From sequence record MK250021.1: a stretch of DNA of 64,000 bases; one strand, 5' to 3'. Positions 6,001 through 64,000 of this stretch are shown here, piece by piece. The position numbers and the translations under genes are program-made. The notes beneath the pieces were generated by a model. The model was not told the DNA's origin, did no database searches, and saw only the letters and a program-made list of their open reading frames with translations. How positions within the stretch are numbered: position 1 is the stretch's first letter; every line of letters starts with the position of its first letter.

Positions 6001-7263
6001 TTCATCCTAATCAAAAAACACGCTTGAATCAAATCGATTATATATTCTATATGAATTATTATGTGTACAAAAATTCTTGATTATAAAATCATTAATACTA
6101 AAGCTATAATTTTCAGCATTATTATGATATATTTTTATATTAGTTCTATATGTCTTAAAAGGCTCTTTATCATTATTAAACGTAAATGAGCCGTTAATAT
6201 TAAAAGTATAAAAATCATTCTATGCATCCTTATCAACTTTAGTCGTAATATTTCTATCTTTAATATAAGTATTATATACAGTAGGAGACCAGATAAAAAC
6301 AGGTTTATAATATATAAATTTTAATGGTACTGATTTTTGTTTATATCCTAAATAAGCATTCTAAGAAACAACACATTCTGTATATGCACTAACAGACAAT
6401 AATGATTTAGGATCTGTATATATTGCACTAATTTGAAACCTTAATACATTTCGGTCTTCCTATATAAAATTATCAGGTACATACAATAAATTTGTATGTG
6501 GTATTAATGTATTATTATCTGTATTATAATCAAATGCTGGTAATAATAATGTATTGTTATTAAGTTTATCATCTTTCCATTTTGGTAAAGTTATATCCTT
6601 AATTGCCTCTTGTAATTTCTGCTCTTCTATATTAATTTTATTATTATTATATAAAATTACGGGTTTAATAATTAATTTAAATGGAAAGTCACCTATATTT
6701 TTATCATATAAATTCCAATTAGTTAATGAATCATTAATATGTGATTTATTATCGCTCCAATATATTTTAACATTAATCTTATAATTTGCAACATAATGAT
6801 CATCAATATAACCTCCATTAAAATTTGAATTAAATGCACTTGGTAAATCATTACCAATATTTACAAATGTACCTTCATCATATGTAGAATCGTCAGAATG
6901 AAATAATAAATCACTAAATATATTATTTGCTATATTTTTATTAACATTAATATTATTTAATGGGAATATATTTCCATAAATTATTTTATTTGAATTTTTC
7001 TCTGAATTCTTTCCATAAAAAGGTAATTTATCAAATTTTGCTGTTAATTCCATTTTAACAGGATATGGTAAATCACTATTTATATTTTCTTTATCTTTAA
7101 ACTAAAACGAATCAGGGTCATATACATATCCTAATTTATCTGTATTCATGACAGGAATTGGATATTCTACATCTTCATACCCATTTATTAAAACAGATGA
7201 ATTAATAACAACATCTCTCTTATTTGGTGTTAACTTAAATAAATATTTCTTTTCTTTTGCCAT
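1..7263 (-). CDS. Giant hypothetical virion protein, >2421 aa, runs off window; code 15
   Basis: Ten track fragments share one frame and each ends at TAG; ATG at 7263 (MAKEKKYLF); the joins I translated had no TAA/TGA; open to base 1. Confidence 0.85.
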
Positions 7264-7365
7264 TTGTATCCTTAAATCAAATTCGTTTCATTATTTATTA
7301 GATGAAAAAAGAGATATTACTTTTTATATTGAAGTAATATCTCTTTTCATTAAAATTATTTTTAT

Positions 7366-9621
7366 TTAATCATCTTCTGAAACACTAATATCATAATTAA
7401 TATAATTAATACTTGCAATATCTCCAAGATAACCAACGCTATCAAACTCTTTATCGATAGTATCAACTTTATCCTATAATGATATAGAAGTAATTACTTT
7501 TGTTCCTGATGATTCATCTGTATTCTCATACGCAATGTTCTTCGCTATATGTTTAAAATACAAACCATTAACTGAATTACTATTAGGTATTGTATCATCA
7601 AGATGCGAAGTAACTCCAGACGAACTTAATGTATTATTAATAGCGATAGTTAACGCATCATCATTTACATCCTTAATTAAATCTGCAATTTCATTTGTTG
7701 ATGAAAGATTATCAGGAAATGATATAATAATAGAATTAGACCAATCTGATCTTAAAGGATTTGTTGGATAACCTGCTTCTGATATTGATCTTACTTTAAT
7801 CTCTACACGTTCACCTTTCTAGATAGGTATATCTATTTGATTAATGTTAACTTCCGTGGAATCTGCGACATTCTCAACAACCCATTTATAGCCGTTACCA
7901 TCATTTACTTTTGTCTTCATCTATGACTATGATATATTCCAATCAGAGAATGTACCTGTAACGCTTGAACCTGTATTCTAATCATTATATGTAAATGTAT
8001 TTAATAATACAGGTGTATTATCTTCTTTAACATAACGATATGCAATATCAAATCCTATAATTTCTTCTTGTAATTCAGAATTTCCTATACGTGTTTTCTA
8101 TACAGGGATAGAAAAGAAACCTCTGATTCTATATTTAGGATCTGTTAATAAGGCACCATTTGAACGAACTTCAGACTAAAACGCAGAAACATTACTTGAA
8201 TAACTAGACTATGCATTCTATAATTCCAATGTTTGTGTGTTTATTTGCTCCTGTTTCGCGTTATAATCACTGATGTTAGTAATATTCTATAACTCTGATT
8301 TTAAGTCCGCTATGGCAGATTTAAGGCTATCTATCTTTGTCTTATCATCTGCAATAAGAGCTGCTGTATTCTTAATAGTTGTTGTGTCAATTGCCGCATT
8401 AATTTGTGTGTTAACCTATACGACTCTCATATCGGATTCTGATAATGTTGGTGCATTTGGTTTCTAACCACTCCAAGCGGTAACAGTTCTCTCCTTAGCC
8501 TCATCAATCATCTTTGCACCCCAATCAACTACATAATTACTGTAATATTCAGATAATGAAGTTGTTGATACATTACCATTATTATCTTCATATAAAAGAT
8601 TATCAGTATCAACTCTAATCGGTGTTGACCATGTATCTCCTTGAAGATTATATGCTTCTGAAATACCTTTTACATATATAATATCATATTCATGTGCACC
8701 AACTCTTACAGAAATAACTTTACTTCTGAATGGATCTTCATAATAATTAAGTGTCGCATAAACACCTGGCAAAGTCGCTCCTGTAATTCTCTTTAATCTT
8801 ACCTTACTTGAATTCTGGTTAATCGCTATAATCTCAAATATTGAATCACTATATGATAACTAATCTCCAATAGATAACACATTATTTTTCCCCTAATCTA
8901 TACCTTCGTTTGATATTGTAGAATATGTTATATTATCCAATGTATACCAAACATTACCGTTAATAATATCTGGATCCTATATAATCTAGAAAATTCCTGA
9001 TTTAGTATTTCTTACTAATGGTAGTTGAACAATCTCTTCATCTTCAGAATATGAAATATTATTATTAGCTAATAATGATTTCAATGAAAGATAATCCATA
9101 CCAGATGTTATTTGATTATTATTCCACAATGTTGTAGCTGAATCATCATTAGAATTAAGAATTACCCTTACAACCTTAACTCTATCTGCATCATCTTCTA
9201 TCTAACCTGTTAAATCAATATCGACAGTTAATCCTGGAAACATTAAGTCTTCAAAGAACCAATTAGTATCTAATTTAAATGTAGATGGATCTTGTAAACC
9301 AGCAATCTATGTCGGTGTCTAAGGAATCGAGCTCAACTTAATAGTTCTTCTTGAACCATCGTTAAGATTAATTGTTCCTTTACCGGTTGAAAGTGAATTA
9401 AGCGAATCTTCAACAGCTTTCAACCTATTAACAATCGAAGCATAACTTGGTAATTGATATTTAGAATTTGTTCCCTATGTATCTTGATATTCATAAGTTA
9501 CGAATGTATCATTAGTTGTTAAAGATCTTTGCATAGCGGATAATAATGAAAGTTCATTAGTTTGCTATGCAATAGTCTTACGCATATTCTCTGCAAAACT
9601 GTTTATATTATTTGTACTCAT
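7366..9621 (-). CDS. Hypothetical structural protein, 751 aa; code 15
   Basis: ATG 9621 (MSTNNINSF) to TAA 7366 with TAG read as Gln; includes track ORF 8464-8772; central coiled coil. Confidence 0.85.
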
Positions 9622-9634
9622 CTTATATTATCCG

Positions 9635-11515
9635 TTATTTATTTTCTAATTCTTGTATTCTATTATTTAAATCTTGTATATATTTAATCATTAATGGTAT
9701 CAATGACTCATAATTGACAAATGTTGTTCCTCTCTCATTATCATTTGTTTCATCACCTGTTCTATATACTAACTTATCAAATCCAAATCCTTGTAATATA
9801 TACTATGGTAAATCAATACTTGGATATACATTATTGTTATATGTATAATAATTAACCTAAATACCGTTTATAATATCATTTATATTACCATTATCTGTTG
9901 TCCATTCACCTAATGCAGTATCAGCTTGTGATTCAACATTAAATATAGGTTTATAAACAGAAGGAACATTATAAGTATATTCATCATTCAAAATTTTTAT
10001 TGGAGGCGTATAAGATGAACCTTGATATATAGATGTATTGATAAAATCATTTTTTAAATTATTAAGTTGAATCTTAATAACATTATTGCCATCGCTTGTA
10101 GTTGAATCTGTAGACGTGTCTGTAATAGGTAATATAACATTTGTCTTTACATTCTATGCAATAATACCAGATGTTTTTGAGCCATTAAGGTAACCATCTA
10201 ATTTAGTTTCTAGTTCCTCTAATTTTTGTTTATTTTCATCTGTTAACTTAAGTGTTGTCATATAAGCATCTTGAATAGCCATTGTTGACTAAACATTAGT
10301 ATTCATCACATCAATAGCTCTGTTAAGATTACTAACAACATCAGAAAAATCAACACTATTAATAGAAGACATTGTTGTATTATCCTATATCATCGCATCT
10401 GTATTATCATATACAGATAAAGTCTTTATATTAACACGGAATGAATAACTATTACCAAAGAAATTTGCCTTATTAGGACCTCCAAATGATTTCTTCTTAG
10501 TTAATGTAGGAATCTTAATACCTTCTGCTGTACTTTTTGGTGAATCTAAAAATACAATACCAAAAAGATTTATTGCATATGCTGATTTCGTAGTATCATT
10601 CTAATCATAAACACTATAATAAAGAAGAATTGCATTAAAACCAAATTCACATGGTTTTGATGTAATATCACAGAATTGATCTTTAAACTAATTATTAGCA
10701 TCAATATTTACATCATCATAAGAATTAATCTATATTTGATTATTTTTGTCATTACAAAAGTTTCTACAGGCAGTTTGTATCTATGTAATATCCTTTACTA
10801 TTTCATATGCGTCATTCAACTGATAATTTGAATTATTAACATTATCATATCTAGGTTTTGTATCACTTAATATTTTTAATGTATCTACATTATTTGTTCT
10901 TCCTTGTAAATGTTCATTATCACCACAATTATATGTATGCCCATATATATAATTAGTTTCTGCTGAATCCTAAACCTATTTAAAAAATACAGGACCATTA
11001 CCATAACTAGTTGGAATATTAACATAAGTTTCATTAAACATACCAAATTCTGTACTTAATGAATTACCTGCATCTATTGCTCCAAAACATTGAACAGTCC
11101 TTGTTTTATAATTGCCGTTATCTCCTTTTTCTCTATAATAAACGTCATTATTCTTTTGATTTCTCTCTAATGTTAATAAATTATTAATATGTCTATTCTC
11201 AAATGATTTTAACCAATGAAAGAAACAACGCTCAGTAACTGTATGGTATTCTTGATAATTATACTTATCATCATTTAATAATCTTGTTTCAAGATTCATC
11301 ATATAATTCTATAAATCAGTTGCAATTGCTATTGATTCCTATTTAAGATCTGTATTACCAAACATTCTTGGAAGATTAAGTAAAGCATAATGTGACATTG
11401 CAACACCTGTTGCTCGACTATTTAAATTCAAACCAATATCTTCATTAGCAGATGGGAAAACATATAATGTTGCACCGTTATCTCTCAACGGTCTTAATAA
11501 AGGTGTTCTAATCAT
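9635..11515 (-). CDS. Structural protein, 626 aa, with degenerate intramolecular-chaperone (S74-like) C-terminus; code 15
   Basis: MIRTPLLRP... to ...FVNYESLIPLMIKYIQDLNNRIQELENK-TAA; in frame with track ORF 10976-11302. Confidence 0.8.
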
Positions 11516-11533
11516 TTTCTTTAAAAATTAATT

Positions 11534-12505
11534 TTATTTTCTCTCTATCATAATATCATCTGCTGAACGAACTGAATAATCTAATACATCCCAAGATGAT
11601 CCATATTCATCATCATTGGCAATACATTTCAATGTAATTCTATTTAATTCATCCTTTGATATTCTTAAAAATTTATTTTCTTCCCTTGATAATACAACTC
11701 TATAAAATGCTTTTGATTTACTATCATTAAATCTTAATTTAACTATAGAACCAGGAATTCCATTTATAGAAGCAGTATGTTCATCATTTATAGTAACCGT
11801 ATGATTGTAATCATAATAAGTATATATAAATCCAGATTTAATATCATTGTATTGATATTTTGGTAAATTCATTCTTTTTAACTAAATAGCAGTTGCAAAC
11901 AGCATACTCTAATCAAAAGTAAATGACTAAGGTTCATTCAAACTCTACTCAGATGATTTACTTGCGCCATATAAACCAATATAACCTTGTTCATCAGAAT
12001 AACTATTACTAAACTATTTCTTTAAACTATCAACACTACTTATAATCTATTCTAATGTATCAGCCAATGACTAAACGGTTCCATTTCCTAATTCAACACC
12101 AATAGCGCCAGAATTATGTGCATACTTATTCATATCTGAATTAATTTTATCATATGGTACAGTTTTTAATAAGCCACCATCATTATATAAATAACGTCCA
12201 TTTAATGCATCATGGTTTATACCTTCATTATTACTACCACCAGATCTAATAATCTATTCAAGACTTTTTGTATCTTCAACTGAAAACTATTTAGCTGTTA
12301 TTTTATTAAATACACCAGTATTAGCCTTTACATAAGATTTCTAATCATCTGTATTATCTATATTAACTTTAATACATTGTTTATTACTATCATATATATT
12401 ATCTATATAATCAGATATTGATTGATTATTCTCATTAATAATTCTTGGAAGCTAACCAATCATTGTTCTTATAGATATATCATTTAATTTCTCTTTTAAA
12501 CTCAT
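11534..12505 (-). CDS. Hypothetical protein, 323 aa; code 15
   Basis: ATG 12505 (MSLKEKLND) in frame with track ORF 11534-11872 via TAG read-through. Confidence 0.8.
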
Positions 12506-12764
12506 CTATATCAAATAAAGATTTTATTTACTTATTTATTTAGAGAAAATCATACATGTCAAAATTAAATTGATTATTTAAAATAAATTAAATAAAACTT
12601 TATTATATTATATATTTTACTAAACTTTTCTAATAATGTTTATCTATATATAAAATAAAAAAATGATATAATAAAGAAAAAATTCTAAATTACATCATCT
12701 ATATTAATTTCAAAAATATTTTACATTTTCCAAGGATCTACCTTTCTAAAAATATTATTTAATA

Positions 12765-29894: not shown

Positions 29895-30963
29895 GATTAA
29901 TACAGAGTTCTTTGATTTATTGATTAAACATATACTTAAATTATATGATGAAAATAATAATGAAATTAAATTTAATGAAATAACATATAAATTTGAAAAA
30001 CGAAAATTTTCATCAGTTACAAGTTTAGTTATATATGTAGATAATATATCACTAACATAGAAATAGTATCGTTCATATTTTATATTATATAAATGTAGAT
30101 GTGGTCGAGAACATAAAATATTATTACAAAAATATTTCTTAAAAAAGAAATTACATTGTATTAATTGCTGTTAGGATAGAAGTTTTGATGATTATGTAAT
30201 AGCGTATTATAAAGGTAAAATTAAAGAAAATAAACAAATAATATTAAAAGAATTTGATGAATATGATGATTAGTTTAAAGAAAATTATAAAAGAAATCAT
30301 TTATCAAATGAAGAATTTAAAAAATATTTACCTTATATTTATAAAATTAATAATCATTTAATAACAGAAGATATATTAAATAATATAGTATATTATTATA
30401 CAGAACATGTTAATAATCAATTTAAATTTACTGTTAATATTTCTTTTGATAATGGTATTACAAAAGAACCTATAAAATAGTTATATTTAAAATGTAATAC
30501 ATGTGGACGTATATTTAAAATACATACAAATAATATAAGATTACAAGATTTATCAAATATTCAATGTAGAAAATGTAAATTAGTAAATACTACATATCCT
30601 ATTAAAAAATATAAAAATACTAATATAACATATTAGTCAGGAATTGAAAAAGAATTTATTGATTTTTGCTTTTCTAATAATATTGAAATTGAAAATGGTA
30701 AAGAAATTATTTATGAATTTGATAATAAAGTAAGAACATATATAACAGATTTTTATTTACCATAGTTTAAATATATTATAGAACTTAAAGCTAAAAATAA
30801 GTTTTATAGAGATGATTTAAAATCTGGTAAAATTGAAGCAAAAAATAAGGTATGTATTGATTATTGTAATAAAAATAATTTAGAATTTAAGTTTGTGTTT
30901 GATTATGAATTAAATGAATTTAATCAATAGCTTCTAAATGAAAGAGATAGTCTTGAGGAATGA
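29893..30963 (+). CDS. Intron-encoded PD-(D/E)xK-type homing endonuclease, 356 aa; code 15
   Basis: CRCG, CNTCG, CRKC; YQSGIE...RTYITDFYLP...IELK; about 8 TAG; reads through S element to TGA. Confidence 0.8.
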
Positions 30964-31013
30964 AAGTTCCTCGGTAAGATAAAGAGCTTACAAAGTTAAA
31001 TAGAAACAAATAG

Positions 31014-32384
31014 GGTACAGAGGATGTTTCTATTGTTGAGATTTCTGATGGTATGATTGAGGTTCTTGCATCTGATGGTGATGTGTTCCTTGGCGGTCAG
31101 AATTATGATAATGCCATTGTTCAGTGGCTTATCGATGAGTTTAAGAAAGATACAGGTATTGATTTGAGTAAGGATAAGATGGCATATGCACGTCTTGTAG
31201 AGGCAGCAGAGAAAGCAAAGTGTGAGTTGTCAACTACTACTCAGACAGAGATTAACCTTCCTTATATTACTGTATCTGATGGTGTTCCTCAGATGTTGAT
31301 TAAGACTCTTAATCGCGCTACATTTGAGAGACTTACAGAAGATCTTACAAATAAGGTTGTAGAGATTGCACATCGTGCTGTAGAGAAGGCAGGTATTACA
31401 GAGGATCAGATTAGTGAGATTCTTCTTGTTGGCGGCTCTTCACGTATTCCTTCAGTTCAGGATGCATTGGAGAAGTCATTTAACAAACCTTTGAATAAGA
31501 CCTGTAATTTTGATGAGGCTGTTGCACTTGGTGCTGCTATTCAGGCAAATACACTTGCAGGTAATGCAACAGAGGATTCAGTACTTCTTTTGGATGTTAC
31601 ACCAATTTCACTTGGTATTGAGGTAAATGGTTGTGAGATGGCTAAGTTGATTGAAGCTAATACAACTATTCCTACACGTAAGTCACAGACATTTACAACT
31701 GCAGTAGATAATCAACCAGCTGTAACTATTAAGGTACTTCAGGGTGAACGTCCAATGTCCGCTGATAATAAGGTAATTGGTACATTTAATTTGGAGGGTA
31801 TTGCACCAGCTCCTAAGGGTGTTCCTCAGATTGAAGTAACATTTGATATTAATGCGGATGGTATTCTTGAAGTAACTGCAAAGGATAAGGGTACAAATAA
31901 GGAACAGAAGGTAACAATTCAGTCTCCTAACGCACTTTCTGATGAAGAGATTGCACGTATTAAGGCAGATGCTGAGAAGTTTGCAGAAGCAGATAAGAAG
32001 AAGAAAGAGGAAGTTGATAAGTTGAATACTGCAGAACAATATGCAACACAGGTTCAGAAGTATATTGATGATGAGAAAACAGGTGCATCTGTTCCATCTG
32101 ATAAGAAAGAAACATTGAAGACAAAGATTACTGCAGTTCTTGATGCAGTTTCTAAGAAGGATGTATCAGCAGCAGAGACTGCACGTGCAGATCTTGAAAC
32201 TGTATTTAAACCTATTGTTGAGGAAATGTATAAGAATGCAGGTGGTGCAACAGCAGGTCAACCTCAGAATGAATCACAGGGAAATCCATTTGCTAATGCA
32301 GGATTTGGTGATGCAAATGCTTCAACTTCTGATACTAAGGCAGATGATGACGTTCAAGAGGCAGATTTTGAGGAAGTAAAGTAA
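31014..32384 (+). CDS. dnaK: DnaK exon 2 (spliced product 654 aa)
   Basis: GTEDVS, LGGQNYD, LLVGGSSRIP, LLLDVTPISLG, GVPQIEVTFDI. Confidence 0.95.
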   Translation, partial: GTEDVSIVEISDGMIEVLASDGDVFLGGQNYDNAIVQWLIDEFKKDTGIDLSKDKMAYARLVEAAEKAKCELSTTTQTEINLPYITVSDGVPQMLIKTLNRATFERLTEDLTNKVVEIAHRAVEKAGITEDQISEILLVGGSSRIPSVQDALEKSFNKPLNKTCNFDEAVALGAAIQANTLAGNATEDSVLLLDVTPISLGIEVNGCEMAKLIEANTTIPTRKSQTFTTAVDNQPAVTIKVLQGERPMSADNKVIGTFNLEGIAPAPKGVPQIEVTFDINADGILEVTAKDKGTNKEQKVTIQSPNALSDEEIARIKADAEKFAEADKKKKEEVDKLNTAEQYATQVQKYIDDEKTGASVPSDKKETLKTKITAVLDAVSKKDVSAAETARADLETVFKPIVEEMYKNAGGATAGQPQNESQGNPFANAGFGDANASTSDTKADDDVQEADFEEVK

Positions 32385-43546: not shown

Positions 43547-43618
43547 TGGGGATTAGTATAGTGGTCAGTACAGAGGTCTCTAAAACCTTTAGGCCGAGTT
43601 CGAGTCTCGGATCCCCAA
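43547..43618 (+). tRNA. Amber suppressor tRNA (anticodon CTA), Gln-type
   Basis: TGGGGAT/ATCCCCA acceptor, loop ctCTAaa (43580-82), T arm ccgag-ttcgagt-ctcgg. Confidence 0.95.
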
Positions 43619-43660
43619 CAATTAAATGACATAAGTAATATTTTAAAGATTTGATGAATT

Positions 43661-45474: not shown

Positions 45475-45881
45475 GGGGATGAATTTGGATTTGCTTATTA
45501 ATTATGTGGTAATAAATCGTGTAGGAAAGTTAATAGCCTTTTGTAGTAATACAAAGAAACTTAGCAAATAAATTTAAATGACGACGAAATAGAATTTCGT
45601 ATGGCAGCTTAATCCTGATAGGATTGGTAATATACACCCATTGAAGCATTTGCTCCTTATACGGTAAGTTTGAGCATTGCCACGGAGTTCGTAAGAGTGA
45701 TAATCTCTGTTAAATAAAACTCTTACATATACTTATTCATTGTCCAATAAGAGTGATTATGACATTAAACTGTTTAACTCTAATAACACAGATATAAATG
45801 AAAACTAATAAAGACATACGCACGTAGATAGTTTATTATTGACATGTTAGTAATACGTGGTTTCGAGTACCACCATCTCCA
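45475..45881 (+). ncRNA. ssrA: tmRNA
   Basis: GGGGATG/CATCTCC acceptor with G3.U70, GGATTTG, T arm gtggt-ttcgagt-accac, tag ORF 45580-45612 DDEIEFRMAA-TAA. Confidence 0.92.
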
Positions 45882-46020
45882 CATTTTTAGATTATATTTC
45901 ATAATATAGAATTTTTAATTGTTTAATTTTGTAAATGAGTTGTATGTTTAGATAAACATATGACTCATTTTTTTGTATAATAATAAATAAGATAATAAAA
46001 CTAAATATAAGCATAAATAT

Positions 46021-51170: not shown

Positions 51171-51701
51171 ATGAATACAAATGAAGCAAAAGTAATCAAC
51201 TGGTTTGATATTAAGGACGATGTAAAAGTCATTAATGAGAATACTAAACATAAAAATAATGTTGAGAATAAAGTAAAACATAATCATGCAAATAATATTA
51301 ATATATTTGATGGGTCTATTCAAGTAAATCATGCTATTTGCAAAAAAACTACTGCAAAGATTATTGAGTCATTTGAAAGTGTACTTGTACATAATGTAGC
51401 TGATAAAGTAAAGTATCATTGTGATGGTGGCATCTTTAATGGTAAGACAGTTTGTATTAAATGTCGTGCTAATGCATATAATACAGGTGGAAACTTTACA
51501 TTCACAGAAGATGATTTAACAGCGGATATGATTGCTGTTTATTACTATGATGAGAATAGTAATCTTGGACATTGGTTTATTTGTGATAGAAATCGTTTGA
51601 GCAAGAATAAGATGAAACAATCACAAAATATTTATATTGTTCATCAAGATTATATTAAGAAACATGCATGGTGTGAATATACGGTAACGTTTAATAAATA
51701 A
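51171..51701 (+). CDS. Hypothetical protein
   Basis: Track ORF. Confidence 0.8.
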   Translation: MNTNEAKVINWFDIKDDVKVINENTKHKNNVENKVKHNHANNINIFDGSIQVNHAICKKTTAKIIESFESVLVHNVADKVKYHCDGGIFNGKTVCIKCRANAYNTGGNFTFTEDDLTADMIAVYYYDENSNLGHWFICDRNRLSKNKMKQSQNIYIVHQDYIKKHAWCEYTVTFNK

Positions 51702-51802
51702 TTTTTAATTTTTTGAGAAAAAAGTTTGTAAAATTATAGACTTTTGAAAAAAATTTAGATATATATTATATAGAATAAATTAAAATAATAAATAAGATAA
51801 TT

Positions 51803-51931
51803 ATGAAAACTTTAAATATGACATATTGTATACATCCAGTTTGTGGTATGGTTCACATGTTCCCATGTGGAGGTGGTCGACCTATGTCTTTACTTGAGGA
51901 TTTAAAGTTTTCTTGTATGTTGCAATCATAA
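51803..51931 (+). CDS. Putative leader peptide, 42 aa
   Basis: MKTLNMTYCIHPVCGMVHMFPCGGGRPMSLLEDLKFSCMLQS just before a terminator. Confidence 0.5.
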   Translation: MKTLNMTYCIHPVCGMVHMFPCGGGRPMSLLEDLKFSCMLQS

Positions 51932-51960
51932 CCGGTTAACTCAACATATATACAATTTTT

Positions 51961-52010
51961 AAACCTCAAGTAGAAAATAGCAGAAAATCTACTTGAGGTT
52001 TTATTTTTTA
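51961..52010 (+). terminator. Terminator/attenuator hairpin ahead of tRNA cluster
   Basis: 14-bp aaacctcaagtaga/tctacttgaggttt plus T tract. Confidence 0.8.
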
Positions 52011-52014
52011 ATAT

Positions 52015-52087
52015 GGTCCGTCTGGTGTAATTGGTAACATGACAGATTGTGGTTCTGTTGTTCAGGGTTCGAGCCCCTAACGTGACC
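52015..52087 (+). tRNA. tRNA-His(GTG), irregular acceptor stem
   Basis: acaga-ttGTGgt-tctgt; G-1:C73. Confidence 0.8.
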
Positions 52088-52106
52088 CAAAATATTATTA
52101 ATATTT

Positions 52107-52183
52107 AGCGTAGTGGCCCAGTTGGTCTAAGGCACCTGTTTTGGGAACAGGTTAGATCGCACGTTCGAATCGTGTCTACGCTA
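52107..52183 (+). tRNA. tRNA-Pro(TGG)
   Basis: agcgtag/ctacgct; cctgt-ttTGGga-acagg. Confidence 0.92.
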
Positions 52184-52297
52184 CAGAATAGAGTTCTTAT
52201 GTTATCCTTACATAACTAAAAGAACTAAAACTTAAGATGGTAAGGCATCTATATAATGGAAGTTCACGCCCAAGGGAAGATTTATAAGTTATAATTT

Positions 52298-52372
52298 ACT
52301 CTGTTAACTCAATTGGATTAGAGTATTTCGCTACGAACGAAAAGGTTGTGAGTTCGATTCTTACACAGAGTA
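52298..52372 (+). tRNA. tRNA-Arg(ACG)
   Basis: actctgt/acagagt; tttcg-ctACGaa-cgaaa. Confidence 0.92.
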
Positions 52373-52381
52373 CAAGTAAAT

Positions 52382-52454
52382 ATCTCTATAGCTCAAAAGA
52401 ATAGAGCAGTTCTCTCCTAAAGAACAGATAACAGTTTGATTCTGTTTGGAGATA
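52382..52454 (+). tRNA. tRNA-Arg(CCT)
   Basis: atctcta/tggagat; gttct-ctCCTaa-agaac; T loop TTTGATT. Confidence 0.85.
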
Positions 52455-52541
52455 CAAACAAAATTAACATTATTAATATAGACTTTTATCTATTAATTGA
52501 ATATATTATAATGTAATTTGAATTTTAAATACTATTAAAAT

Positions 52542-52950
52542 GTAGGGGAGTAGAGTTCCCATCATTTAAAGAGTTTCGAGAAGAAGGTATTGTATGTAAA
52601 AGCATTAAGTTTCGTTTAGCTGACGAAATGTGACCACGCGGTGATGGTATTCATGTACATAGGTCCATCCGTATAACTTCAGGGAATCGTAAGCATTAAT
52701 CTTGGCGAGTACAGTTTTTAGTCTGAAATGACGAATTTTCCTACTGGTTGCTCAATATGATATTAAGAGTCGGAGATAATTATTTGTAAGTTCCACAATT
52801 ACGAGAGGAAAATGGAATTAAGTTGAAGGAATAACGTGATTATTCTTGGTGTGATTAGGAGAACGAAAATAACCAGTATGTATGGTGTACGTGTGCATAC
52901 AGAAACAAAGCAAATAATAGCCCTTAGAGAATTTGCCGAGTAAAGGACAT
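52542..52950 (+). ncRNA. Unidentified structured non-coding region
   Basis: GC-richer, several hairpins, closing stem 52542-49/52737-44. Confidence 0.45.
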
Positions 52951-52971
52951 TAATAGTATTTTTATTTATTT

Positions 52972-53049
52972 GCAGTATTGGTGTAGCTGGAGGCGCATTC
53001 CTGACTTCCACTCAGGCGGCTTGCGCGAGTTCGATTCTCGCATACTGCT
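52972..53049 (+). tRNA. tRNA-Gly(TCC)
   Basis: gcagtat/atactgc; cctga-ctTCCac-tcagg; U73. Confidence 0.92.
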
Positions 53050-53123
53050 CATAATAAGGTAGAGTATCAATGAATGATAGAGAATAAGTTCCTGTCTGAG
53101 ATCAACCTATCTGTAGTATTTAG

Positions 53124-53149
53124 ATAATTTTATGTATACATAAAATTAT
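53124..53149. repeat. Perfect 26-bp palindrome
   Basis: ataattttatgta|tacataaaattat. Confidence 0.9.
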
Positions 53150-53258
53150 AACGAAGTTTATATTACCTGTAGTCGTAATATTCAAATCGTTCGTTGACAT
53201 AGTTATTCCGTGATGTAGTAGAGAGTTATAATCAGCATATAACAGACGGAATATTTTT

Positions 53259-53331
53259 GCGGAAGTATATCAATGGTTAGATAGATACGTTGCCAACGTA
53301 TAGGTTGTGAGTTCGAGTCTCATTTTCCGCT
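53259..53331 (+). tRNA. tRNA-Gly(GCC)
   Basis: gcggaag/tttccgc; atacg-ttGCCaa-cgtat; U73. Confidence 0.92.
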
Positions 53332-53474
53332 CTATAAACGTTTCGAGGTTTTAAAGTTGAATGTACCACCTTGCGCTTGTGTTACTATTCACCTTTGAGT
53401 AATAGTAAAAAACTTATGGTATCAAGGATGTTTTCTACGTTGTTACATCCATTTTTTTGAATATGATAGAATAT

Positions 53475-53621
53475 GAGAGTCAATACAGCAAATTAAATTG
53501 ATAGATAATGTTTGAAGATTATACACAAAAAGACTCTTGAATCAAATTATAATGGGAGGCAATACAGCAAATTTTGTATTAAGGATTATTTTGCTAAAAT
53601 AATATTCTATACGCCTCCTGA
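53475..53621 (+). repeat. Two tandem structured AATACAGCAAATT elements
   Basis: 13-nt identical core, different but self-complementary closing stems, each followed by TGA. Confidence 0.75.
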
Positions 53622-53626
53622 TACTT

Positions 53627-53710
53627 GACGAGTTGCTGAGAATTGGTTAATCGCACGATCTGCAAAATCGTTGGTCATATGACATGTCGGTTCGAGTCCG
53701 ACACTCGTCT
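53627..53710 (+). tRNA. tRNA-Cys(GCA) with long variable arm
   Basis: gacgagt/actcgtc; acgat-ctGCAaa-atcgt; 14-nt variable region; U73. Confidence 0.88.
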
Positions 53711-53743
53711 CTTTAGATTAATATTTTAAAATACTATTATAAG

Positions 53744-54004
53744 ATGAAGAAATTATTTTCTTTTATATTTTGTACAATAATGATTACATCATTATTTGGA
53801 TGTGCAACAAAACAAGATACAATTAGTTACCTTGATAATTATGTACATAAAAATATTTCTGAAAATTGTATAAACATTTTCAGTAATCAAAGATATAATG
53901 AATATATTGATACTGTTACTAATATTAAATATTATGTTTATATAGATTATAATAGTAACATCAATATAATAGATAAAAGATTTCCGAGGTATACAGCTCG
54001 TTAA
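53744..54004 (+). CDS. Small putative lipoprotein
   Basis: MKKLFSFIF...LFGC lipobox-like. Confidence 0.65.
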   Translation: MKKLFSFIFCTIMITSLFGCATKQDTISYLDNYVHKNISENCINIFSNQRYNEYIDTVTNIKYYVYIDYNSNINIIDKRFPRYTAR

Positions 54005-54302
54005 AAGAGGTTGACTTGTATATTCTACATTACCTACTGTATAACAATATATGAGTGTACATGTGAAAAGATACACCATGTTCTATTAATATAAAAATGT
54101 ACATATATAGGGTAACAATTATATTAATATCAGATGCATGACATATATGAATATAATAACGAATTCGTGAAATGACTATTGTTTTTAGTTGCTTGGAAAC
54201 GGCGAACTTAGTTTTATCAATAGAGGAAGTATAATATTAAAACAGTTAAATGTAAATCTTTCTGAGACAATGGGGACAACTTGTAGTAAGAGAGTATTTT
54301 TA

Positions 54303-54417
54303 GCTAGTATAGTTTAGTGGCAAAACACCCAAATCCCAGGGATAAGAGATGGTTTGAGTTGTAGTGTACAATACAATATACAGAAGATTTTAGTGAGTTC
54401 GATTCTCACTGCTAGCT
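54303..54417 (+). ncRNA. tRNA-like RNA with expanded anticodon/variable region
   Basis: Acceptor gctagta/tgctagc, D arm and T arm intact; ~65 nt between D and T arms. Confidence 0.7.
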
Positions 54418-54423
54418 CAATAT

Positions 54424-54551
54424 GAAGTGCGTAGTTTAAATGGTAAAACATCCTTTGAGTAGGACTCTGACGAGAGATAGATAACAATGCTAGACTCTAT
54501 TTAATTCCATTGTTTTATTAATGAGTATAGGTTCGAATCCTATGGTACTTC
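54424..54551 (+). ncRNA. tRNA-like RNA with multi-stem insert replacing anticodon arm
   Basis: gaagtgc/gtacttc, D arm and T arm atagg-ttcgaat-cctat intact; ~76-nt insert. Confidence 0.7.
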
Positions 54552-54841
54552 CAAATTTATATAGATAAAAAGATTCTGGTGATTAGATAAAACATTATAA
54601 GAAAAGAGAAAAAACTTAGGTAACTGCAGATAACTAAGGGTCGTAAGAGTATATGAAGAAAGATGAACTATGGATACCTCCTTATAATGCGTTTTATCAA
54701 TAATTAAAGTAGTCTATAATATAAGTTCATTAACGTTATAGAAAAAACGAATATTGATAAGTCTACTATGCAGATGGGGCATTGAGAATGCCGTATAGTT
54801 CTAAAGCATCGTAAAACAGTTTATTTATATATTTTTAATAT

Positions 54842-54916
54842 GGCTAGATAGCTCAGTTCGGTTAGAGCGCGTGATTCATATCCACGAGGTCGTGTGTTCG
54901 ATCCACACTCTTGCTA
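54842..54916 (+). tRNA. tRNA-Met or Ile2 (CAT)
   Basis: ggctaga/tcttgct; loop ttCATat; T arm gtgtg-ttcgatc-cacac. Confidence 0.85.
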
Positions 54917-54995
54917 CAGTGTTTTTAGTTGTTTATTAATGATTTGAGATATATCAATTTTTGGTATATCTCTTTTTTATTTAGAAAATAATTTG

Positions 54996-55003
54996 TATCT
55001 TTG
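54996..55003 (+). promoter_or_regulatory. Bacteroidota sigmaA -7 element
   Basis: TATCTTTG before 55030. Confidence 0.7.
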
Positions 55004-55029
55004 TATTATTAATTTAAATTTAATAGATT

Positions 55030-55521
55030 ATGAAGAAATATAAAGTATATCAACTTCGTCGAGAAAATGAAGTTATTATCGATGATAATGAAATATATGA
55101 TGCAAGAATGAAAGTTATTGCAGAGTATGAAATTAAATCAGATAGAATTGATTTTGATATTATTTCAGAAGATATATGGCATTTATGTAATGTTCATTGT
55201 TGGGATAGATCATGGCATGCAGGTGAAGGTGTTCAGAAAGATGATATTATATTAACTCCTACATCTGACTTTGATGGTTTCTGTAATAGTGATATTGTCG
55301 TAGAAACCGAAGATGGACTTTATCTTGCAGAATCATTTGGATTTATGAAAGTAAATTCGTTAGAAGATGCATCATATAGAATCATTGCGAGATTTCCGTT
55401 TATTTCGTGGGATAATATGAGAAATAAGAATGAATATGATAAAGATAAACTATCTGAAGTAAAACGTAAGATTGATTATGAGAATAAATTGATGTTAGAA
55501 GAATATAAAAATAAAAAATAA
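55030..55521 (+). CDS. Hypothetical protein
   Basis: Track ORF. Confidence 0.8.
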   Translation: MKKYKVYQLRRENEVIIDDNEIYDARMKVIAEYEIKSDRIDFDIISEDIWHLCNVHCWDRSWHAGEGVQKDDIILTPTSDFDGFCNSDIVVETEDGLYLAESFGFMKVNSLEDASYRIIARFPFISWDNMRNKNEYDKDKLSEVKRKIDYENKLMLEEYKNKK

Positions 55522-57187: not shown

Positions 57188-58027
57188 ATGGCTTTATTCT
57201 TAAACAACAATATGCAATATGGTTCTGATAATAAGACATATAGTGATTCTATTGTAATGTGTTATAATAAATAGTTTTTCTCTGATTATGACGCAGCCAA
57301 AGAAGCGTTAATAAATAAAAACTCATTACCTGGTGAAGTTACATTTGCTTATTATTATGATAAAAATTCAGAGTATGGTCAAAACGCCATTTTTTCTGTA
57401 GGTCCATTAACACAAGGTTCAAATATCATATATAAAAATGCTAATGAAATAGATGCAGTCGTAGATTCTTTAAATGAAACTATTGCAGATATAAATTCAA
57501 GTATATCTAATATAGAATAGAATATAAATGTAAGCATAGATTTATATAATACATCTATAAATACATCATTATCTTATATTTCTGATTATATATTAAATAT
57601 AGAAAATGAAATATAGTTATTAGATGCATCAAATAATGCAAAACATAATGAAATTATAACATATATGGATGATGTTTCTAATAATTTATCTTAGAAAATT
57701 AATAAGACATCAAATAATATAATTCAATATATTAATACAACAATATATAAATTAATTTCTGATAATAACACATCAACAAATTAGAATATAATAGATACAA
57801 GTACAGCATTGCATGAAATTATATATAATTATAAAGATGAATTAAATAGTACAATTAATGATATATCTATACGTCTAAATAATTTTAGTTTAACAAATAA
57901 TATTATTTAGGTTCCAAAAAATACAGAAGATATATCAATATTGACTCATCGTTTATTAAAAATAGAAGATGATATTTTACATATAAAAACTAAATTAAAT
58001 ATGACAGAAAATAATTATGGAATATAA
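57188..58027 (+). CDS. Coiled-coil structural protein, 279 aa; code 15
   Basis: ATG 57188 to TAA 58025; several TAG; absent from track. Confidence 0.8.
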
Positions 58028-60992
58028 AAGTAAATTAGTTTAGGAATTAATTTCTATTTTGGATAAACGAACATATCTCGCAAAGTAGGAATTAAATAAA
58101 GCTATTAATTTTGTAAAAACATATGATACATCTATAACAAATTTTATAAATAATGACTAGTTAAGATAGGATAATGTTGTAAATAACAGAATAGATGAAT
58201 TATCTAGAAAACATACATCTGATTTAACAACTTTAAATAATAATATAGATGATAAATTTACAAATGTAAAATCAGAAGTTAATAAATCAATTAAAGACAC
58301 AAAACGTGAATTAGAACAAAATATCATCAATACAAAAAATGATACATATGATTATATCGATGATTAGCAGGATTTAACAGATAGATCAATAAGATCTATT
58401 GATACTAAATATAAATTATTAGTTGACGATTTATCTACAAGAACAGATACGAGTATACATGATTTATATACAAAGCTTACTAATGGTATTGATGATTTAT
58501 ATTAGAAGTATGATGCATCGATAAAAGATATATCAAGTCGTGTAGATTCATCTTTTAGAACAATGATACATTATATAGATACATCCGTAGCAATTCTAAG
58601 AGAACAAACTATTACAAATGCAAAAATATTAGAAGATAATTTAAATGCATCTATTAATAGAATTAAAGGCGGATTAGATGTTAATATTACAAATATATAT
58701 GATTATATAGACGATTAGTTAGATGATATTGATAATAAATTTGGTGATATTAAAAAAGAACAAAATGTTCAAAATATATCCATAAATGATATAAGTTCTA
58801 ATGTTGATATTAAATATAAGTATTTAGAGACATTAATTAATAAATCATCCGGTGATATGGGTGATATAGTTGTAGATGGTATAGCGGGATTAAATAAAAA
58901 AATCGAAGAACTGACATTAACAGTTAATAATAATTATACTGATGTTACCGGGAAAATTAATAATACAAATACAAGTGTAACAAAATTGGAAGAAGGAACT
59001 TCTTCCATTTCTGATACATTAAAAAACCATATAAAAGAAGCTAAAGAATATTAGAATAATACAAATAGTAGTATTAGAACAATAAATTCATCTGTTAATG
59101 ATTTGGAAAATCTCACAAATAAGTTAAAAACAACAGTTTCTGAACATACAGATAATATAGGAGATTTAAAGAAAAAAGTAGTTAAAAATATAGAAAATAT
59201 AGATAACGCTAATACATCTATTAATATATTAGAAAGAACTACAAAAAATATAAGTACCGATTTAAATTCATTAAATAAAAAATTTGATACTTTAGTTAAT
59301 TCAGAAAACACTAATAATGTTATAGACACATTTAAGGAAGTAGAAAGTTTTCTTGATTCTATATCAGATTCAAGTACATTAACAGAAATGTTAAAAAATA
59401 TGTCTGATGATATTAGTAATAATATTAATATAAAAATAGAAGAATTAAATAAAAATATTACTGATATTAAAACTGATATTACAGGAAATGTTTCTATAGA
59501 TATTAATGCTATTAAAGATACAATAAAAATAATTAATACATCTATTAATAAAATAGATTCATCATTATTAGATATTAGTACCAAGTTAAATTCATCTATT
59601 AATGAAGTATATAATTATGTCAATACTGTAGTAATTAATAATATTAATAGTTCATTTAATACAGTTAATACATCAATATTAGATATATCTAATAGATTAA
59701 ATAATTTAAATAAGTCTTATAATAAGACTTTAATTTTTGCAAATGATATTAATTCATCATTAAATGATATTTCTACAAAATTCAATGAATTTAAAGACAA
59801 TATAATAACTAATAATGAAAATATAAATAGTTCAATAATTAATATAAATTCATCTATTTTAATTATTGATAATTCTATAGATCTTATTAATACATCTATT
59901 TTAGATATATCATCAAAGTTAAATGATGCTACTAACAATTTAACAAATACAACAAGTAGAGTTGCAAATTTAGAATTAAATAATGTTACAAGTTTAACTA
60001 ATACTACAGGTACGGAAACAAATATATGGAATGATGATAATTAGATAAACCAAAATTCATATGTCATTGATAAAAATATATTTAATGTCACAGAAAACGG
60101 AGTTAAAATAGAAAAAGAGATAAAAACAGTAAATCCTAATATTATAAAGGAAATTACAAATAATGAGAAAATAATAACATCTACATTAAATAATATTAAT
60201 TCAAGTATTAATATTATAAATACTAGTGTAAATACATTAGAAACAAACATTGATTCAATTAAAAATGAATTTGAAAATATTGATGTATTAAATACAGAAT
60301 ATTTTAATAATAAAAATGAAGAAACGACAAATGGATTTAATACTATAGGTACATGCTTTGATTTTATTATTGATAATATGTATTATAAAAAGCCAGAAAA
60401 TATTAATGTGTCATTTAATGTTTCACCAACTAATATTATAAAAGGTAAACGTACAAATGTAATATTTACATATAAAATTAATAATTATACAGATTATATT
60501 GAAGATATTAAATATAATAATATCAATACAGATTTATTAGAAAATACAGAAAATTTAATAATAAGTGATAATATTAGCAGAGTATTATATATAAAAACAA
60601 ATTATAAAGATAAGAAAGGTGCATAGCCTGAAAATAATCCTTATAATATTACGAAAACAGTTATAGCAACATCAGAATTATATTATTGGACATCTGATAA
60701 TATAGTATTTGAATCTAATTATACAAATGAAAATAAACCTAATTGGGTCTTATATACAGGAACATCATTTACATTTGATAATAAAGGTATTAACAAATAT
60801 GTGTTCTTTGTATCAACATTAAATAAGCAGGAATCTGAATTCTTTATTTATAAGCATGGTAGTAGTCCTACATTAGGCGGTGGTATTACAAATTTGGGCA
60901 AAATAACAATTAAAATATATGATGATATACTTACCTATTATTTATATAGAACGAATAATGTATTAGGAGGTAATTATGATATTAAATTTTAA
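58017..60992 (+). CDS. Long coiled-coil fibre-like protein, 991 aa; code 15
   Basis: Track ORFs 58857, 59103, 60378, 60801 share one frame joined at TAG; ends TAA. Confidence 0.85.
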
Positions 60993-61020
60993 TTTATAAA
61001 TATAAAAATATAATATTAAT

Positions 61021-64000
61021 ATGGCAATACAATTAGCAGATACACTAAGAACTGATAATAATACATATCCCATAGCATTGTCAGAAGAAATAAAAGGTGG
61101 TATGCGTGGCGTTGAAACTGTTGATGATTTATAGAAAATAAATAGTGCTTTAATATCTTCTGGTATGCTTGTTTGGGTAGATTCTGAAAAATCATATTAT
61201 AAGTATACAGATAGTGAATGGAGTATATTAAAAACAGGTTCAATGGGAAATGATAGTGTATAGATATTTACATCTAAACAAATAAAAATTTTAAAAGAAC
61301 AAGATGCATTACCTGAATAGTATATATGGATACGTACAAAGGATGATATAGATTATGATGGTGAAATAACAGATAATATATATAAAACCACAAAAAATGG
61401 CAATTACATTGATATTTTATTTCAAGCTATAAGGCAGTTACAAACAGAAGTTGCTAAAATGAGAAATACATTCAAATATGGTATGTATTCTTGCACCAAT
61501 AAAGAAATGGCAATATCAAATGTTGTTAATGATATGAAAGTAACAGCTGCAGAAGAACCATTATGGGCAATTGAGGAAGATGGACTATCCTATATAGATT
61601 CAATAGATTTTAGTGGTAATATAAGCTTAATTAATAAAGATGACGCAATATCTATAGATAATACTTCTGGTACTTATTATGATATAAATACAAAATTATC
61701 AGATAAAAAAATATTTTGGAGTCATCAACCATCCGAGACTGATGATGATCTTGTAGGTACATGTGAAGATCCAAAATTATTTATATATTTAACTATAGGT
61801 ATTAAATAGATTTAGTCATTAAAATATTTTTTAGATTTTTCTTTGGAACTTGAAACAAACGAGAAAATAGAAGATGATGAAAATGATGAAACGCATCAAT
61901 CTCAAAATATTTTAGGAGACATAACATTTAATAATTTATTACAATCTTCATATGATACTGTTAATATAATGTTATTATTAAACAGAAAATAGGAGAAAAA
62001 TGGTTAGTTGTATGGTAATAATTATTTATATGTTTCTATCAGTGATTATATAACTAATAATGTTATTTTATCTGGATATTATAATCCAGATGATAAACAA
62101 TTACATAAGGATATACAAGAATTAAAATACCAATATTTTTTTAGTAAAATATATTTTGGTAATATTATATTAAGTAAATTTACGATATATTCAAGATATT
62201 AGGATTTTACAAAATTTATAAATGAAACTGATAAGTCTATTAAACCGAATATACCAAATGATAGTGACTATAGATATAAAGTAGCACATATAACAATTCG
62301 TTCTGTTACGGATGAAAAAGAATTATCGGAAATAAAACAATATTTACCTAGTAATGAATTAATATGGGTAGAAGAAACGAGAACATTATGGATTAAAACT
62401 AAAAATAAAGTTATACAAATTGGTGGCAATGGTTCATCAAGTGGTGATGACGATAATAAAGATAATATGACAAAAGAAGAATTAATAACAGCTCTACAAG
62501 AAATGGGTATTATTTATGAATCTGACAATGGATTAGAATTATAGCAAGCAAAAGTAGAAGATATTACTTTTGTAAATTCTAATTTATCAGAAAAATATGT
62601 ATATTCATTAGATTCCGAAGGAAATTTACATTCATCAGTTATTCCAGAAACAACTTTGAAAAATAGAATTGATGACTCTAATTTATATGATAATAATACA
62701 ACGGTTGGAAGTAAAATGAATATCCGTGGATTTGTAGCGAATCTTGTATGTAAAGAACATGGCAAAGATGCAAATTCAACTGGTGCAATTATGGATGAAA
62801 CAGACCGTATTCATATTTCTCAATTCTATGCGCCATTATCAACGGATATTGAAGAAGGAAAAATAGGATGTTCACATGCATTCATTGAATTGACAAATAC
62901 ATCAAAATACGATTTTCAATTAGATGGATGTTATTTGCATTTCTTTAGTTTAAGCGATCAATCAAAAGAAACATATTATAAATTAGCGTTATCTGGAGTA
63001 ATACCTGCAGGAAATACTTTCTTAATCAGGGGGAAAAAATATATAGATTATAAAAATTCAAATGTATTTATAAAAGTAGAATCATATGATTAGGAATGGT
63101 TTACTGATAAAGATACATTAATAGATTTAACAGTAAACGTATCTTATAAAGCATATGGATTAGCTTTAACATATGGAGATACCGTAAATGGTGAATCCAT
63201 TACGCCTACAACAATATTAGCAAAAACGGATACATCAAAAACATGTTTATATGTTGATAATTATATAGATGGTATTTTATATTCTATTTCGGCAGCAAAT
63301 ATACCAGAATCGCATAGAAGATGGGCGATATATCAAGCGGGATATAATGTTCAATCAAATAGTTTATTTAGAGAAACATTTTTGTTAGATCCTGCAAAAC
63401 AAGGTTTTCAAGCATTACAATCAGCATGTAAAGATACTTCAAGATCAAGACATGCAAAAGATACTGACTTTACAATGTTATCATTGGCAAATGAATTTAT
63501 AGAATTCCCTAAATCTTATAATATAAAAGCAGTATCAGATTATACTCCAAAAGCATCTTATGAACATAAAACAGTTATTACTGAAAAATCAAATATTGAT
63601 TTAAATAAACCAAATATGATTACATGTGCATTTGGTATAGATATGTTAAAAACAAGATGTTTTAACTGGATTTCTGGTGGTATATTTGATGAATTCATTT
63701 GGATAAGAGAAAAAGGTACATCAGAATGGTAGTGTAGATATGAATCGTATACAAGTTCTAAATGCTCTATATAGACAGAAAAAATAAATGAAAGTATTAC
63801 AAAGAAAACTTTTGATGAAACCGATCAAAAATAGAAAGAAGTTAAACAATATATTTATGATAGAATAACCGGAATATTTCCTGGTACAAAAACACAATAT
63901 ACTGCGCATAAAGTAATAATAAATTTACCAACTCCTTCTTCTAGTACTAAAGTATATGAATATTGTGTAGGGCGTTCATTATTAAATGGTAACCCTGATC
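61021..64000 (+). CDS. Large virion/fibre protein, >993 aa, partial; lamin-tail-like and phosphatase-N-like segments; code 15
   Basis: Four track fragments in one frame; MAIQLADTL; HAFIELTNTS..QLDGCYLHF; HKVIINLP...YEYCVGR. Confidence 0.8.

Follow-up and report, generated by a model that had tools for sequence, protein, structure and literature searches.

Two oversized tRNA-like RNAs in the tRNA array of phage Lak-B2 are probably non-decoding tRNA mimics

The tRNA array of the megaphage Lak-B2 contains two adjacent, oversized tRNA-like genes, here called A and B, which have the outer arms of a tRNA and carry other conserved modules where an anticodon arm would be. Selection maintains the structure of both, the + strand is the functional strand, the locus is strongly represented in RNA libraries and neither element bears signatures of splicing. 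We consider it probable that A is a selected, unspliced tRNA mimic which does not decode, with B as its twin. An original prediction for A had listed three options (an intron-containing tRNA, a tRNA mimic or a decaying tRNA), and the evidence favours the second.

Lak megaphages are among the largest phages of human and animal guts, and they rewire translation by TAG recoding, suppressor tRNAs, a tmRNA of their own and a CCA-type enzyme. If our reading is right, part of the Lak "tRNA" inventory is not tRNA, since A and B would display other conserved modules on a tRNA frame. It would also correct an automatic tRNA-Gly(CCC) annotation and set A and B apart from the intron-bearing tRNAs of Lak phages. 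The two would then be a small, defined pair of candidates for tRNA mimicry by a phage of bacteria, a setting with hardly any known RNAs of this kind.

Genomic setting and prior annotation

The DNA analysed (the window) is a stretch of 64,000 nucleotides from sequence record MK250021.1, and coordinates given without another label refer to it. Its positions 52000-55000 match Prevotella phage Lak-B2 (MK250021.1, 424000-427000) with 100% identity; identity is 99% with the remaining B-type Lak genomes from baboons and ~79% with the A and C types from humans. G+C content is ~25%. Many long frames of the window stay open only if TAG codes for an amino acid, and the window also encodes a suppressor tRNA(CTA) (43547-43619), so the genome itself shows the TAG recoding that is the published code of Lak phages. 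TAG=Q was assumed solely for reading neighbour genes, the products of which include a T4-like portal protein, a GrpE homologue and a glucosaminidase, among others. Long genes with 10-30 in-frame TAG codons adjoin TAG-free genes (1-12514 and 57188-63999), and this is the known Lak mosaic of recoded and standard-code genes. A normal tmRNA, separate from A and B, lies at 45475-45884, and the tRNA array occupies 52015-54917.

Both elements have been catalogued before. In Table S2B of Devoto et al. 2019 (PMC6784885), A (Lak-B2 426303-426417) is listed as "Gly CCC, 27.53" and B (Lak-B2 426425-426551, i.e., 54425-54551 of the window) as "Undet ???", while the Lak-A1 homologues appear as "Gly CCC 39.69" and "Pseudo TTG". 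These are automatic tRNAscan-SE calls which that paper leaves uncommented, and they fall outside the tRNA introns that it discusses (Tyr GTA, Phe GAA, Thr TGT and Gly TCC). Our literature search found A and B catalogued as low-scoring tRNA, and no description of them as a covarying RNA pair centred on anything other than tRNA. The Gly CCC call arises because counting from the D arm places U-CCC-A at positions 33-37, and we judge this annotation of A to be unlikely.

Detection and anatomy of A

The Rfam tRNA model (RF00005) covers A end to end (54303-54417, + strand, 115 nt) at 37.5 bits, against a gathering score of 29. In that alignment, Infernal skips 17 anticodon-arm positions and places a 57-nt local insert there instead. 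ARAGORN called nothing at A in its default or intron modes, the latter being a check that the original prediction had suggested. With the -ps90 option, it offered a Gly(ccc) model that we rejected as poor, having a 22-nt intron and a mismatched anticodon stem. An Rfam search of 51500-55500 at E values up to 10 found no other family at A, B or their flanks. This holds for YrlA, the bacterial Y RNA (RF02553), too, the weak matches of which fall on ordinary tRNAs.

The outer arms are canonical, as had been claimed, and both the RF00005 match and covariation bear this out. The 7-bp acceptor stem (54303-54309 with 54410-54416) is 100% paired in 12 variants, with 3/7 pairs changed on both sides and one alternating between U-A and U.G, and position 73 is a U at 54417. 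The D arm (54312-54326) has an invariant 4-bp stem and a 7-nt loop with GG, in which one position varies. The T arm (54393-54409) combines a canonical 7-nt T loop with a 5-bp stem that is likewise 100% paired and has double changes in 4/5 pairs.

Between the D and T stems lie 66 nt (54327-54392), close to the ~65 nt of the original prediction. A single A at the place of position 26 directly precedes hairpin H1 (54328-54341), which sits where an anticodon arm would and consists of an invariant 3-bp CCC/GGG stem and an 8-nt loop. Positions 7-8 of this loop vary (CA, AA, AG), with changes in lineage L037 and in pig RNA contigs. The purine-rich 9-nt joint J1 follows (54342-54350) and is identical in 12/12 variants while the adjoining stems change. 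Next comes the expansion arm H2 (54351-54381, 31 nt), the length of which is 31-32 nt in B types, 20 nt in A/C types and 10 nt in lineage L039. The distal 6-bp helix of H2 (54358-63 with 54372-77) has double changes in 3/6 pairs among B-type lineages, and the A/C-type helix varies between A-U and G.U. The ttgta/tacaa hairpin noticed in the original prediction is real and belongs to this covarying helix. The 11-nt joint J2 (54382-54392) is invariant except for its last base (A/G); it may pair weakly with J1, forming the base of H2. No anticodon arm with a 5-bp stem and 7-nt loop (U33, purine 37) can be drawn, in agreement with the original prediction, and the 3-bp/8-nt hairpin is all that the sequence allows.

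Conservation and covariation of A

We collected variants of A and B from GenBank records, IMG/VR and JGI metagenomes (A/C-type and B-type), and we reached further lineages (L033, L034, L035, L037 and L039) via homologues of a neighbour gene at 55030-55521. This gave 12 distinct versions of A and 9 of B, which represent few Lak lineages. In A, the structure comprises 25 pairs in five helices, and 100% of the 258 pair cells in the 12 variants are standard pairs. As a control, sliding the partners by 1-3 columns left 38-48% paired. Changes on both sides of a pair were found in 10/25 pairs. The U.G and G.U variants pair in the + strand RNA and would not pair in its complement, which identifies the + strand RNA as the molecule under selection.

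In addition, clades with ~23% divergence over the region share an identical stretch of 24 nt in A, which reaches from the D stem through J1. The original prediction had argued from the intact outer arms to selection; this was correct, and it is covariation that supports it. Because the stems and joints concerned are invariant, covariation cannot test the inner fold of A (H1, and J1 with J2). Thermodynamic z-scores are weak, from -0.7 to -1.9 in 5/6 folds (the sixth, B of L039, reaches -3.6), so the case for structure in A and B rests on covariation and not on folding energy.

These comparisons also bear on whether A might be a decaying tRNA pseudogene. Decay would account for the low tRNA scores and the lack of an anticodon arm. 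However, compensatory changes have preserved all stems of A across the Lak lineages, the acceptor, T and inner hairpin stems among them; the inner core does not vary, and A is highly represented in RNA libraries. The random stem decay in homologues that the original prediction had named as a contrary sign was not seen, all pairs being kept in the 12 variants. Compensatory changes together with an invariant core refute the decay option, which we regard as extremely improbable.

Scans of IMG/VR and JGI metagenomes found element A in Lak phages only and in no other phages. A search with the core of A against one genome from each of 185,579 prokaryote species returned no homologue, just one chance match. 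We also looked in Lak genomes for an antisense target of an invariant 12-mer in A and found only one-mismatch matches, at the control level.

The twin element B

B (54424-54552, + strand) is a paralogue of A that lies 6 nt downstream of it and has six covarying helices. Its 8-pair acceptor (54424-31 with 54544-51) is followed on the same strand by the same D arm as in A (54434-49), and then by H1 (54451-64), a small hairpin H1b (54465-76), H2 (54483-54514) and the T arm (54527-43). We built a covariance model of B from six sequences and realigned it on nine variants. The resulting 29 pairs in six helices (acceptor, D, H1, H1b, H2 and T) are 100% paired and 12 of them are double-changed. None of 500 shuffles (0/500) reached this, a comparison in which fitting the alignment to the model favours the structure; the compensatory changes are also plain by eye.

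The twin is informative about the part of A that does not vary. H1 of B comes directly after the position-26 A, as in A, and it covaries (U-A, C-G, A-U), which supports the homologous CCC/GGG stem and is the sole covariation support for H1 of A. B too has no anticodon arm, and its 6/8-nt loop holds no stable anticodon-like triplet. At the top of its acceptor is an extra constant G(-1):C73 pair, as in tRNA-His; at the bottom of the stem, most lineages have G.G and two have A-U. The B model matches A at 24-31 bits, which is consistent with common descent of A and B. A hammerhead-like motif in B, CUGACGAG, is not conserved in the A/C type and was treated as chance.

RNA libraries and maturation signals

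We compared contigs from four metatranscriptomic runs (pig and other gut samples) with the A/C-type copy L006. Single contigs run colinearly, with no joints, through A, B and a conserved noncoding element upstream of A; these being assembled contigs, ends are invisible in them, rare forms are dropped and DNA may be included. Very long contigs (one of 82 kb) indicate that DNA was present in at least one of the libraries. In one pig run, a 1328-nt contig carrying the upstream element, A and B has a mean depth of 4036, which amounts to ~5 million letters or ~3% of the 158-million-letter run. Covering a 540-kb genome evenly at that depth would need ~2.2 billion letters. The depth therefore does not reflect uniform genome DNA, and the A/B locus is strongly over-represented, as expected for abundant RNA. 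This agrees with the highly expressed intergenic regions that have been reported (10.1101/356790).

A and B also look like the neighbouring tRNAs at their ends. All nine true tRNAs of the window, as well as A and B, have a trailer of N73-C (3' flanks at, e.g., 52089, 54418, 54552 and 54918), with A as the next base in 9/11 cases, including A and B. All 11 genes have AT-rich leaders and none encodes CCA. Lak genomes do encode a nucleotidyltransferase of the PolyA_pol family (CCA type), and a search of them for a class IIa synthetase core found none. After tRNA-Met, a terminator-like hairpin (54946-54972), which with its T run extends over 54946-54982 (+ strand; one found, 0.3 expected in shuffles), is the likely end of the tRNA/ncRNA transcription unit. 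The trailers, the leaders, the nucleotidyltransferase and the terminator-like hairpin together suggest that A and B undergo the same synthesis and trimming as the tRNAs beside them.

Two of those neighbouring tRNAs have oddities of their own. tRNA-Cys(GCA) (53627-53711) is 85 nt long with a long variable arm; in Rfam it matches tRNA-Sec best, at 38 bits, which falls short of the gathering score. tRNA-His(GTG) (52015-52088) has an irregular acceptor, in which a bulged U separates two runs of 3 pairs and G(-1):C73 is added. The Lak-C1 copy is identical, and Rfam aligns only positions 8-63 of this tRNA.

Is A spliced?

The original prediction's first option was an intron-containing tRNA. On this reading, A is a tRNA-Gly(CCC) from which 40-50 nt are removed, as proposed for the 'enigmatic introns' of Lak phages. 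Its attractions are that U33-CCC-A37 lies at canonical spacing from the D arm, that tRNAscan-SE calls Gly CCC and that Lak tRNA-Tyr, Phe, Thr and Gly(TCC) carry inserts at 37/38. We tried the removal of every single block between the D and T stems, requiring a 5-bp stem, a 7-nt loop and a 4-5-nt variable loop. The best excision restores only 1-2/5 anticodon-stem pairs in A and 3/5 in B. The original prediction had proposed a partner for the 5' strand in the pairing cccaa/ttgag, but this occurs in some B-type genomes only and is missing in the A/C type, L033 and L035. As it is not conserved, it is probably due to chance.

Other evidence points the same way. A group I intron would need far more sequence than the insert of A provides, and the Rfam search (E up to 10) gave no intron match. 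The supposed anticodon is CCA in two lineages. Neither a tRNA splicing endonuclease (PF01974) nor RtcB (PF01139) was found in two complete Lak genomes (Lak-C1 and one of 553 kb), while control genomes were positive. The assembled contigs of the four RNA libraries are unspliced and show no joints, in data from which assembly drops rare forms.

The published Lak introns also differ from what is seen here. The 'enigmatic intron' tRNAs (PMC6784885) resemble A and B in being oversized tRNA-like genes of the same genomes, but they have a complete anticodon stem, with perfect pairing in the host tRNA, and an insert of 79-93 nt at 37/38 which contains its own acceptor/T-arm minihelix. A and B, in contrast, have no restorable anticodon arm and no nested minihelix. 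We therefore hold splicing of A to be very unlikely.

Could A decode or be charged?

An unspliced A might still work as an unconventional tRNA of glycine type, in which the anticodon stem is short, the loop has 8 nt and the variable arm is very long; such a tRNA might read a four-base codon or cause a frameshift. The classical frameshift suppressor sufD is a tRNA-Gly with an 8-nt loop. We keep this reading as a rival because A conserves U33, U73 and letters like C35/C36. Neither U73 nor G1:C72 varies, and a UCC in the H1 loop is kept in all variants; these we take to match part of the bacterial glycine identity set. The layout of H1 plus H2 also resembles that of a class II tRNA.

Several features of A are nevertheless hard to reconcile with decoding. 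The H1 stem has only 3 bp, and the extra loop base lies 5' of the U, which puts the loop off U-turn geometry. Pairs 2:71 and 3:70 depart from the glycine set, and 2:71 varies. The would-be positions 36/37 vary as well: CCC becomes CCA in L037 and in the pig RNA contigs, and in the latter the base following the triplet is also changed. A glycine tRNA would not tolerate such changes. The phage already has tRNA-Gly(TCC) and tRNA-Gly(GCC), and the loop of the twin B offers nothing stable to read with. On balance, a decoding A seems to us distinctly unlikely.

A and B could also be tRNA mimics that are aminoacylated while reading no codon. The lower acceptor-stem pairs of A and B drift across lineages. 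At the acceptor ends, A keeps G1:C72 and U73 (glycine-like), and B keeps G(-1):C73 (histidine-like) together with its first three pairs. What is retained at these ends is precisely what synthetases recognise. If aminoacylated, A and B could tie up synthetases or EF-Tu, or supply amino acids for use outside the ribosome, and their charging would be part of the megaphage's take-over of host translation. We rate this version of mimicry as rather unlikely.

Flanking conserved RNAs

The noncoding element upstream of A (54149-54296, + strand, ~148 nt) ends 6 nt before A and is nearly invariant among Lak clades. It shows 85% identity to an intergenic stretch of an unrelated crAss-like phage, cr130_1 (L004:2501-2644), where the copy lies ~60 nt upstream of a suppressor tRNA(CTA), annotated as tRNA-Gln. 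Among IMG/VR sequences it occurs only in Lak phages and cr130_1. No covariation was seen in it and it has no Rfam match. It shares RNA-library contigs with A and B and is probably part of the same transcript as A.

On the other side, the stretch between B and tRNA-Met is also noncoding and conserved. Within it (54560-54840) there is a possible 16-codon frame at 54653-54703, in which two proline codons differ between clades at the third base only and an indel shifts the frame near the end.

These neighbours raise the possibility that A and B serve as processing signals only, i.e., as tRNA punctuation, with cuts by RNase P and RNase Z freeing the conserved flanking RNAs and with no function of their own. 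The upstream element, ending so close to A, fits this, as do its place ahead of a real tRNA in cr130_1, the conserved noncoding ~285 nt between B and tRNA-Met, and the trailer and leader signatures that A and B have in common with true tRNAs. However, punctuation needs the top half of a tRNA only, which leaves the invariance of H1, J1 and J2 in A unexplained, and likewise the covariation of four inner helices in B and the conservation of its loops. The ordinary tRNAs of the array could also serve the purpose. Punctuation as the whole function of A and B is thus unlikely in our view.

Proposed role and comparison with known RNAs

The reading that we prefer, non-decoding tRNA mimicry by A and B, can be put as a sequence of steps. 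A and B would derive from tRNAs and have kept the top half (the acceptor stem, T arm and D-arm elbow) while losing the decoding arm. In A, the anticodon arm would have given way to a short hairpin (3-bp stem, 8-nt loop), a hairpin of variable length and two joints that are purine-rich and invariant. Transcription of both elements would run along the + strand within the tRNA array of the phage (52015-54917, with the terminator at ~54946), and the RNAs would be excised like tRNAs by RNase P and 3' processing, and given CCA by the nucleotidyltransferase of the phage or of the host. They would then accumulate unspliced as stable, tRNA-shaped RNAs which read no codon. The tRNA frame may display the invariant inner segments to a partner whose usual ligands are tRNAs, making A and B mimics or decoys; the choice of any specific partner would be far less certain than the mimicry itself. 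Their excision might also set the ends of the conserved flanking RNAs (the 148-nt upstream element and the ~285 nt before tRNA-Met).

The nearest structural relatives among ordinary tRNAs are those of class II (Leu, Ser, bacterial Tyr and Sec), which share with A a five-arm layout with an extra hairpin before the T arm. However, class II tRNAs retain an anticodon arm of 5 bp and 7 nt, with short joints; in A, the hairpin measures 3 bp and 8 nt and the joints 9 and 11 nt. B departs further from class II in having two extra hairpins.

Non-decoding tRNA-shaped modules within a longer noncoding transcript are known from the TMER vtRNAs of the herpesvirus MHV68 and from the mascRNA of MALAT1, and recognition of these modules by RNase P and RNase Z releases the neighbouring RNAs. 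Those systems are eukaryotic and use Pol III or Pol II. In A and B, by comparison, the processing is putative and the inner modules are conserved in their own right.

The tRNA-like domain of tmRNA and engineered tRNA scaffolds likewise keep the top half of a tRNA and have another module in place of the anticodon arm. A and B differ from tmRNA in having no mRNA-like part and in retaining a full D arm. The likeness to engineered scaffolds is one of analogy only.

Other oversized tRNA-like genes

Further oversized tRNA-like genes came up in the comparison. In the Lak-B4 record there are three, at 30616-30713, 30934-31027 and 202321-202416 (L041:57-154, L041:375-468 and L042:42-137); one of them has a 32-nt insert in place of the anticodon arm and the other two have long extra arms. 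An unrelated phage, on a 136-kb IMG/VR contig, has a ~95-nt tRNA-like gene (L032:4609-4706, minus strand) that ARAGORN does not call; its D-arm sequence is the same as that of A, and it has a UAU anticodon-like loop and a long, G+C-rich extra arm.

The tRNA-Gly(TCC) of Lak-C1 (L001:3063-3221) carries an insert of ~85 nt at 37/38 which is missing in Lak-B2 (52972-53050) and Lak-A1. Like the published introns of tRNA-Tyr and tRNA-Phe, this insert has an acceptor/T-arm minihelix of its own, which suggests that the Lak inserts with a minihelix form a family of tRNA-like insertion elements.
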